Shown one piece after another: positions 6,241-9,200 of a stretch of DNA of 64,000 nt; position 1 is the stretch's first letter; the number at the start of each line of letters is the position of its first letter. The stretch covers positions 19,344,001-19,408,000 of the forward strand of contig CM119372.1 in the NCBI GenBank assembly GCA_051294905.1, given 5' to 3'. Below the pieces are notes generated by a model, which had not been told where the DNA came from, ran no database searches, and saw only the letters and a list, made by a program, of their open reading frames with translations. The position numbers and the translations under genes were made by a program. Source of the stretch: Botryllus schlosseri. Lineage: Eukaryota.

Positions 6241-9200
6241 TTAATCTTGACTGCAACCAGTAACGACTTTCTCCAAGGTCCCATACCTATCCACATCATA
6301 TGTGCAGTTATTTGGAGTCGCAGCAAGTCTGCATGCAGTGATACTCCTGGTCACTTCATCAAACGTTCCCCCGATGACACCTGCGAAATAAATTGCTGTG
6401 AACTGAAGGGAGGCGTTTCGTTATTTCTGGTATATTTACCCAATAGGTGATATGGGAAATTACCATTGGAGGATGGCAGTTGGCAGATATCCGTATTTTA
6501 TGAATTTCAGGATTAATCTGTCGTGCGATAGAGTAGACTACGGTGAATGAAACACTATGTATATTGTATTGTGTTGTATTTGTATACACATAGCACACAT
6601 GCCGAGATAGGTGTTTGATTTCAAAGACTATTCCTATTTTTCATTGTATAGCCATATATCTTTTTGAATATAGCTTTCAATACAATATCCATTGTATAAT
6701 AATATTTATTAACCCGAAGACTTTTCGGGTGCCTCTTTTCAAGAGTTAACGGCACACTAAAGGGATTTAAACAGATTTAAAAGCAAAACCAAAAAGGCAA
6801 AGTATGACGCAACAATCAAAATCACAAACTATGAAGTATACGGACATACGGTACTATAGTAGCAACGCAATTCGTAAATAAACAGTTACACGCACGGAAC
6901 ACATGCACTAATGAGTAGGGCTGGGCAAAATCGAGTACCTGAGTGATTCGATTCTGAATCACGTATTATGCTTCGAGTCGAGTCGAGTATTCGAGTATCA
7001 CTGATTATGACGTCATAACAGAATGAAATATGTCCAAGTTCTAACATGTACCTTTTATGCCGCAACAAAGAATATAATGTCTGTTATCGAACAAATTAAA
7101 GAGACTTTGGTATTTTTTCGACCAAACAGATTTCATTGCACTTCGTAGCAGGGTTATGCGATGAATACGATTTCGGAAATGTGTTATTTTCAGTAACGTT
7201 GGTAGCTTTGTACTATGTGTCGTATGCTTCGATGAAGCCAATCAGGGTTTTAAGCCTCCCACATTTGAAAATTGCATCAAAACTATAGTTGTCGTTGACA
7301 AATTCACTTCCAGTTGTATGGAGCGTATAATTCCACTACTCGAAAAAATCGTCTTTCACTACTCGACTCGAATCATTAAATTTAATACTCGATTCAGATT
7401 CGAGTACTCGAATCATTGTGCCCAGCCCTACTAATGAGAAATTTGTAGGTTATAGAGGAAATCTTTTTGTCTACATAAAATAGGTTTGTTCAACTGAATA
7501 ATAGTAGACTCCAGCACTTTTAGATGAAACAAAGACCTACCACGCGCAATGACAGTGAACATATTGTCATCATAGTGCTGTGCACAGGCGAGGTTTTCAC
7601 TCAAATGCTGACCGATTGACGAAGCATATGCTTCGTAATCGTCATAGCAGTCTGTTTTGGCAGCCGATTTGCACTGACGTGCAAGCTCGAGTGCGAGTAT
7701 TTGCGCATGTTTTTGACCGAATCAATTTTGGGATATGCTGCTTAATACGCTCAAACAATCTTTGAGATGTACGTCCTACATACCTACTATCACAGTGGCA
7801 CTTGTATTGGTAAACAACATTACTTGCATTAAAGGCAGGGAAGTACGTCTTTTCGAGAGTTGGGCAACAAGCGTTTCGTTGTGTACACCACATGCGTGTT
7901 TACGCTGTAATAACAACGGTGAACAGCCGATTTATTGAGTTTTTCAAAACGGTTAGACACGTTACCTAGCCAAGGTAAGTGTAAAAATGCCGGGCATTTT
8001 TCTGGACCGTATTTGGGAGCTATATCCGATTTTTTCAAAACCCTAGAGATGGAGCATTTTAATATGTGGTCTGGATAGCCATTTTTGGACAGAATCAAGT
8101 GGATATCATCCAATTCGCGTGACAGTTTTTCCGGTGAACAGATGCGCAGGGCCCGATTGACAAGAGATGAAATAAGGTTTAATTTACGCCGCTTCGGGCA
8201 AAATGAATCCCAACGGATATAATGACCAGTGAAGGTAGGTTCTCTGTACACCGACGTTAAAAACGTTTGTCCTGATCTCTCTACTAAGGCGTCTAAAAAG
8301 GGAAGGGTAGCATCAGTTTCCTTTTCCCTTTAGTGTGCCGTCAACTCTTGAAAAGAGGCACCCCAGAAGTCTTCGAGTTAATAAATATTATTATACAATG
8401 GATATTGTATTGGAAGCTATATTCAAGTTCTGTACCACGAACCAGCTATCTATCTTTTTGAAAGGATAAAACTGAACGGAACGAACACATGCATAGCCAG
8501 AATATAGATTGGGAGTGAGGGTGCTACACTCAGTACAATGTTACTTTATGTAACAAAGACGTGACGTCACAAATATTTCGAGAGTAGTGAAGATGAATGG
8601 CGTGTTAATGCACTAACAAATTGGAAGTTGTAGCATTTGTCTCATACGAAAGGAGACGGACAACAGTTCATTTCTCTCTGCACCATCTAGGATTCTAGGT
8701 TCTTGGATAGAGATCTGAAGGGAATGTCACTATGAACGTGTATCATTGGTATTCAACAACCAAATCATTGCGCTGACTTTCTACTCAGACTCACGGGCTA
8801 CTTGTTGAGAGTCTCTTTCCAACATTTGTACCATTTGTATTGAAATTTCAGGTTTGTAGTCACGGATTAAATACCAGAATTTAGGATCAGCTACTCACCA
8901 TGCTTCGCTCTACAGGCACACCCAAGACATGCGGAATTGGAGGTGTCCAAAACGTACACAGGTGCGCTCAGAACATCAGAAAGAACCTAGCAAACCACAG
9001 TGAATTACACATTGGTCAAGAATATAAAACACGAGCTCGGCAAAACCTGCAAGATGTCTTCGTTGTTTGAAGCCCCACCAGTTGCTAAAACTCTGGATCC
9101 CGGTTTGAGACTGTAGCCAAGTCGCTCAGCATGGCATCGTTTGGCTAGGAATTGACCCTCGATCACAGCACGAACTTCTATCTCAGCACGAAATTCAGGT

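Follow-up and report, generated by a model that had tools for sequence, protein, structure and literature searches.

Does the last intron of XYLB in Botryllus schlosseri hold a self-cleaving RNA, and if it does, where does this RNA belong and does it affect the gene? The stretch of DNA analysed here (the window) comprises 64,000 nucleotides of contig CM119372.1 (positions 19,344,001 to 19,408,000 of the forward strand, GenBank assembly GCA_051294905.1). An earlier note had placed a minimal type I hammerhead ribozyme with a U3-A8 pair in its core at 6709-6749 on the minus strand of the window. This 41-base motif is very probably an ordinary copy of the hammerhead motif of Penelope-like retrotransposons (Penelope-like elements, PLEs), carried by a dead, truncated element inside the last XYLB intron.

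The hammerhead motif and its homologues

Read on the minus strand, 6756..6705 has the sequence U GUGCC G UUAACUC UUGAAAA G A GGCAC C C GAAA AGUCU U C↓G GGUUAA(U)AAA, in which the arrow marks the predicted cut. Inspection of this sequence recovers every hammerhead element that the earlier note had listed, in type I order and in register over minus-strand 6756..6708, with UUGAAAA replacing CUGANGA. The 5' strand of stem I, (G)UUAACUC, occupies 6743..6750 and is followed by the core box UUGAAAA at 6736..6742 (U3 U4 G5 A6 A7 A8 A9), which is recognized from its sequence and from conservation in homologues. The remnant of stem II covers 6727..6735 and consists of G10.1 (6735), A (6734), GGCAC (6733-6729), C (6728) and C11.1 (6727). 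G12, A13, A14 and A15.1 come next and lead into a near-palindrome, AAGUCUU, that ends in U16.1 (6717..6726 in all; GAAA box 6726-6723, AAGUCUU 6723-6717). The UUC site ends at C17 (6716), and the scissile bond is predicted between this residue and N1.1 (6715). The 3' strand of stem I, GGGUUAA(U), spans 6708..6715, and AAUAAA (6705..6710) follows the stem directly. Stem I pairs 6749-6743 with 6715-6709 over 7 bp, including the wobble U6744-G6714, and G6750-U6708 is a possible eighth pair. The 3-8 pair of the window copy is formed by U6742 and A6737. A stem III hairpin is absent, and AAGUCUU can pair with itself at six of its seven positions.

Core box 1, the 3-8 pair, the GAAA, A15.1-U16.1 and H17 positions and stem I of a type I hammerhead are each present. 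Of the features that mark the minimal hammerheads of PLEs, we find the location in a non-coding repeat and the palindromic 15.2-16.2 segment without a stem III hairpin, and we do not find a long hairpin formed locally by stem II, of 6-8 bp and with a base left unpaired after A9. As the 9-nt segment between the boxes allows no hairpin, we treat the motif as a variant within the PLE minimal hammerhead kind.

The motif is homologous to a large set of PLE sequences. The same layout recurs at the same position of the 3' untranslated region (UTR) in at least eight PLE families of the genome and in eight outside contigs that encode PLE proteins 42-62% identical. Examples are UUUCUC-CUGAAGA-...-GAAA-AGCUU-C↓GAGAAA, UUCCC-UUGAUAA-...-C↓GGGAA, CGCUA-CUGAUGA-...-U↓UAGCG, CACUG-CUGAAGA-...-C↓CAGUG and UUACAG-UUGAAAA-...-C↓CUGUAA. 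A covariance model was built from eight sequences, leaving out the family of the window copy and its two nearest sister families. Minus-strand 6756..6710 is nevertheless the top match of this model in the window (25.7 bits, rough E 7e-5). A genome-wide search with it produced about 1e5 rough first-look candidates; 150 of these were scored, and every one had 57 bits or more.

Pairs were counted in 42 matches (29 distinct sequences) aligned to the covariance model. Standard pairs fill 95.1% of the alignment cells and 14 of 14 pairs have changed on both sides; none of 500 shuffles did as well, and slid controls were 24-39% paired. The six stem I pairs of the model are 98% paired, each with compensatory changes, and at 10.1-11.1 there are 25 GC pairs, two GU and one AU. 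G5, A6, A9, G12, A13, A14, A15.1 and U16.1 are invariant in the 24 distinct intact sequences, and H17 of these homologues is C, U or A and never G. Where the window copy has its near-palindrome, relatives carry the perfect palindromes AAGCUU, AAUAUU, AAAAUUUU and AACGUU. Comparison within a single family says nothing about structure because the copies are nearly identical. Across PLE families, however, stem I and the core are conserved with covariation, which is the family check that the earlier note had asked for, and its assignment to the Penelope-associated minimal type I hammerheads agrees with these data and with the position in a PLE 3' UTR.

Among the 29 distinct sequences the 3-8 pair is C-G in 14, U-A in 14 and unpaired in one degenerate copy. 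As judged from this alignment, U3-A8 is a true compensatory version of C3-G8, as the earlier note had supposed. It is not new here: U3-A8 in PLE hammerheads was already published in 2014 by Cervera & de la Pena (PMC4209133), who reported minimal hammerheads in the repeats of all PLEs and described U3-A8 core covariation in the Cercyon elements of Schistosoma mansoni, with about 1300 hits that a CUGANGA descriptor had overlooked. The warning that a standard CUGANGA search misses such a motif is on record there as well. A protein tree of nine elements is poorly resolved; its bootstraps favour two to three changes at the 3-8 pair, and a single origin of U3-A8 is not excluded by it. A distant relative (L109:634-680) has CUGACGU, with A9 changed to U, together with the palindrome ACUCGAGU and a bulged pseudoknot of 7 bp. 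A9U is reported for a functional natural hammerhead (PMC10085705).

A candidate pseudoknot in place of stem II

The earlier note had described a short stem II hairpin. The pair G10.1-C11.1 is indeed retained, but no local hairpin extends it; the extension is a covarying pseudoknot with 6755-6751. In the homologues the stretch from A9 to G12 measures 9-10 nt and has the form G-A-(6 nt)-C. Its inner bases (six; five here, GGCAC at 6733-6729) are complementary to bases located 5' of stem I, which in the window copy are GUGCC at minus-strand 6751..6755. All six pseudoknot columns have changed on both sides across families, the partners being CUGAC/GUCAG, ACUAAC/GUUAGU, ACUGAC/GUCAGU, CAAGG/CCUUG, CUGGC/GCCAG and GUCCAU/AUGGAC. 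As the pseudoknot was left out of the covariance model, its covariation is independent of the structure given to the model. Cognate stem I and pseudoknot partners outdo all 20000 permutations. When a descriptor demanded at least 3 bp of hairpin in stem II, it failed to recover the motif at 6756..6705; its one match was the unrelated canonical minimal hammerhead at L014 2694..2658.

In the structure that we envisage, a stem I of 7-8 bp would be combined with an isosteric U3-A8 in place of C3-G8, stem II would be reduced to G10.1-C11.1, and its 7-nt loop would pair through five to six bases with the strand 5' of stem I. The pseudoknot would stack on G10.1-C11.1, with the single A10.2 crossing the deep groove. 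The outcome would be a 7-bp 'stem II', and a linker of 0-5 nt would hold its distal end to that of stem I. The near-palindrome, which lacks a stem III hairpin, could pair between two copies of the RNA and so allow use as a dimer.

Watson-Crick pseudoknots that join stem I to stem II have been described for every hammerhead type and are important for speed (PMC3088659). The ribozymes of Perreault et al. 2011, among them the intronic hammerhead of human C10orf118, likewise have a 5-6 bp pseudoknot, formed by the stem II loop with sequence that is attached to stem I, and this pseudoknot is required for fast cleavage in the published cases (PMC3088659). They differ in having normal stems II and III and in cleaving as monomers. 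Reviews describe PLE hammerheads as being without tertiary contacts (PMC6155905). We tentatively suggest from the aligned families that this PLE clade might possess a hammerhead sub-architecture of its own, in which stem II is a single G-C pair and its loop bases pair, as a 6-bp pseudoknot, with the sequence flanking stem I on the 5' side. We did not find it described for PLEs, where an earlier description may exist. Such a fold would give these 'minimal' ribozymes the tertiary contact from stem I to stem II said to be absent from PLE hammerheads.

The hammerheads of Cervera & de la Pena (PMC4209133) are the nearest comparison. Like the present motif they are of type I, lie in a non-coding PLE repeat, lack a stem III hairpin and have palindromic 15.x-16.x positions; they also share the conserved G10.1-C11.1, the U3-A8 swap and the huge copy number. 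Stem I is longer here, with 5-8 bp compared with 4-5 in their consensus. The hammerhead of the Anolis Poseidon PLE (PAc; PMC11167929) is also PLE-borne and lies in a non-coding repeat near both the start of reverse transcription and the start of the open reading frame (ORF). It differs by overlapping the start codon and having a C3-G8 core, whereas the motif described here lies about 108 nt upstream of the ATG in intact elements. The Rfam family Hammerhead_1 (RF00163) has the same core boxes and the same type I order and gives no score on the window copy.

The Penelope-like element that carries the motif

The motif-bearing repeat gave 1911 first-look candidates in the 495-Mb genome. In the window its 3' UTR covers minus-strand 6664..6915 and includes the stop codon TAG (6910-6908), the sequence GAAAGCUA (6678-6671) with which insertions usually end and 7 nt of 'tail' (6670-6664); the predicted cut precedes the insertion end by 44 nt. 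As a rule genomic copies terminate at GAAAGCUA, with or without the 30-nt tail tattcaagttctgtaccacgaaccagctat, and in tandem copies this tail runs directly into the 5' leader and ATG of the next unit. The 'tail' and the tandem and inverted arrangements are hallmarks of PLEs (PMC8557442). An intact homologue (L060:90-2540:-) encodes 817 amino acids with an RVT_1 match and the motif VVYEFKC..YVGRT. With this reverse transcriptase ORF and a tail that is either present or absent at the ends of copies, the repeat is recognizable as a PLE.

The ORF remnant of the window copy, at minus-strand 7431..8324, corresponds to the C-terminal part of the reverse transcriptase and the GIY-YIG endonuclease; it is 5'-truncated and frameshifted (ORFs 7829-8251, 7642-7893 and 7431-7604). 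A hAT-like miniature inverted-repeat transposable element (MITE) of 515 bp at 6916..7430, with terminal repeats TAGGGCTGGGCA... and the 8-bp target duplication CTCATTAG, is inserted exactly at the PLE stop codon. The end of this MITE repeat also adjoins another PLE copy (L023). RNA reads from other PLE copies skip 6901-7430. On the plus strand, 8326..8449 is an inverted, 5'-truncated PLE 3' end of 124 nt that retains all 30 nt of the tail; the GAAA box of its hammerhead (8334-8379) is mutated, and this hammerhead scores only 12.2 bits with the covariance model. The 5' truncation and frameshift, the split by the MITE and the preceding inverted 124-nt copy with its mutated GAAA box mark the window element as dead.

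In intact elements the motif lies in the non-coding stretch of about 310 nt between the stop codon and the next ORF. No canonical hammerhead was found elsewhere in this stretch or around the ATG. The sequence CAGAUGA at the start codon was considered as a hammerhead and rejected, as U4 is missing and there is no GAAA partner. A non-circular permutation (Eckert et al. 2023) was likewise discarded, the order of the blocks being that of an ordinary type I ribozyme. AAUAAA directly follows stem I in all in-genome PLE families examined, but not in most of the outside relatives, and it may be the poly(A) signal of the PLE itself.

Some further repeats touch on this family. Head-to-tail PLE arrays with intact ORFs of 853-854 amino acids and a period of 2781 bp, often beside inverted copies, occur at G000 C10:6493279-6502458 among other places, and to judge by these features the array families look recently active. 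A second, degenerate PLE hammerhead-like motif is present in the window at 28238-28280 (minus strand), with the layout ACGACGAGUGCUC-CUGAGGA-CAGUAGGUC-GAAGAGCUUC-GAGU and 17.9 bits in the covariance model (E 0.01). An unrelated minimal hammerhead of the hairpin type, ACAC-CUGAUGA-A-GGAGC-GGC-GCUCC-GAAA-GC-UC-GUGU, lies at L014 2694..2658 (minus strand), so that the genome holds two hammerhead architectures, this one and the pseudoknot type. A highly expressed repeat occupies 4582-5369 of the window, and hundreds of RNA reads leave the window copy at 5121 and continue into CCUGACGAGUGUCAGCCGAAAAUAUUCGGG, which is the canonical-core hammerhead of another PLE family, also found at L066:724-767. 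Finally, a tandem repeat of about 190 bp at 1030-2120 appears as repeated near-identical ORFs.

Alternative readings and the XYLB transcript

Several observations weigh against reading the motif as a PLE hammerhead. G6735-C6727 is the sole closing pair of the segment 6735-6727 (GAGGCACCC), which makes a local hairpin impossible, whereas in the consensus of PMC4209133 stem II is a local hairpin of 6-8 bp and an unpaired base separates positions 9 and 10.1. Helix III of the window copy is only near-palindromic, with a central U-U. Hammerhead_1 (RF00163) gives 16.6 bits on a sister family with a canonical core, compared with a cut-off of 34. Two sister families with intact ORFs have U4 changed to C, which is expected to harm catalysis. 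In vitro the published PLE hammerheads are poor at cleavage, and they are believed to work as dimers; in the Anolis PLE, mutants of the hammerhead were without effect on insertion in vitro and public RNA-seq contained no ends at the cut site (PMC11167929). In the RNA reads examined here there is no pile-up of molecule ends at 6715/6716, at a low depth, with reads that derive from other copies and a library type that captures the 2',3'-cyclic phosphate and 5'-OH ends of self-cleavage poorly. The read ends that the earlier note had proposed as a check therefore neither support nor refute cleavage.

As for the sister families with the U4-to-C change, the copies concerned are L083, L094, L096 and L097 (UCGAUAA, in a U3-A8 background) and L098, L099 and L103 (CCGAYGA, in a C3-G8 background). 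Stop-free ORF stretches of 461-875 amino acids adjoin these copies. U4 is otherwise strictly conserved.

The hairpins of the repeat's 3' UTR might merely spell out a relaxed hammerhead by chance. The relaxed core was picked after the fact by the author of the earlier note, the minimum-free-energy fold of the monomer consists of two other hairpins (z only -1.58), and the Rfam hammerhead models (RF00163 and clan CL00010) find no match in the window slice up to E<=10, none in 13 family loci up to E<=1 and none at threshold in seven sister loci. A strict descriptor (C..G or U..A core, 8-10 nt segment, GAAA, U-H, stem I of at least 5 bp) nevertheless matches once in the window, where 0.045 matches are expected per window-sized Markov sequence, and none of 200 random sequences matched when a pseudoknot of at least 5 bp was added. 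A model built from other families recovers the motif and all 14 pairs covary. The pattern is that expected of a hammerhead, chance resemblance is excluded, and the probability that we leave to it is negligible. A different proposal, which is compatible with a PLE hammerhead, is that the conserved structure mainly serves the PLE reverse transcriptase, as a site of protein binding or for recognizing the 3' end, and that the resemblance to a hammerhead is inherited and of no importance for catalysis. The motif is close to the insertion end, the distal ~130 nt of the 3' UTR are far better conserved between subfamilies than the proximal part, the U4-to-C families keep intact ORFs and many copies, and in the Anolis PLE insertion was unchanged by the hammerhead mutations and cleavage needed protein (PMC11167929). 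Protein binding alone would however not lead one to expect that all bases of the catalytic core are kept, that H17 is never G and that the 3-8 pair is only C-G or U-A, and we consider this proposal unlikely. For a PLE hammerhead, release of PLE RNA from tandem or read-through transcripts is the best-supported role by analogy with the literature, and the motif would then be catalytic and act in processing the RNA out of such transcripts.

The last alternative concerns the gene. The earlier note had suggested that part of the XYLB pre-mRNA might end ahead of the last exon, either cut by the intronic copy or polyadenylated at its AAUAAA. The geometry would permit it: the motif and AAUAAA are sense to XYLB and lie within the last intron (minus-strand 6378..8895), which holds the whole PLE remnant, the cleavage site had been correctly placed, and the core of the window copy is intact. 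XYLB is spliced normally, however. Spliced reads and contigs join 8896 to 6377 (GT..AG, boundary ambiguous by at most 4 nt), and this joint is seen in runs X21 and X23 and in contigs of runs X1 and X2, whose label as RNA is a guess; 3-6% of each raw run was read and the depth over XYLB is low. The terminal exon covers 6130..6377 of the minus strand (3' end approximate), as contigs join 6133-6377 to 8896-8983 and 9044-9199, and 3'-biased reads from single cells accumulate at 6158-6354. Position 6714 is covered by 49 reads, all of which have the base of the family and so come from other copies, none being assignable to the locus in the window. These reads and the lack of an end pile-up at 6715/6716 speak against truncation, as does the published behaviour of PLE minimal hammerheads, which depend on a second copy and are slow to cleave. 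The inverted copy at 8326-8449, about 1.5 kb upstream, could moreover sequester the motif in a pre-mRNA duplex of about 100 bp.

The window copy has also acquired a change of its own. Among 55 aligned copies it alone has GGG in the 3' strand of stem I, where the family has A at 6714. The family base makes stem I a perfect Watson-Crick 7-mer and breaks the hairpin ACCCGAA/UUCGGGU by a C-A mismatch. The off-switch that the earlier note had seen in this hairpin is thus perfect only in the window copy, through its private A-to-G change. In folding calculations the inactive fold has a minimum free energy of -12.8 kcal/mol with G6714, compared with -9.0 kcal/mol for the family base, and stem I becomes weaker by 0.9 kcal/mol; this also speaks against an effect on XYLB. 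Truncation of XYLB is for these reasons very improbable, and a minor truncated isoform would be rare, at the low read depth available. With no downstream ORF, the break by the MITE, the private A-to-G at 6714 and the facing inverted partial copy, the window copy is most likely a fossil without effect on XYLB.

The interest of the motif therefore lies with the PLE family. Standard Rfam scans overlook a whole class of such PLE hammerheads, which as tens of thousands of copies and several intact-ORF families form a natural data set for the ribozyme field. Within the clade, nature also provides C3-G8/U3-A8 swaps, along with U4C variants in families whose ORFs are intact. If the RNAs cleave, they would reveal how far stem II can shrink, and they might explain how seemingly too-minimal PLE hammerheads work in cells.

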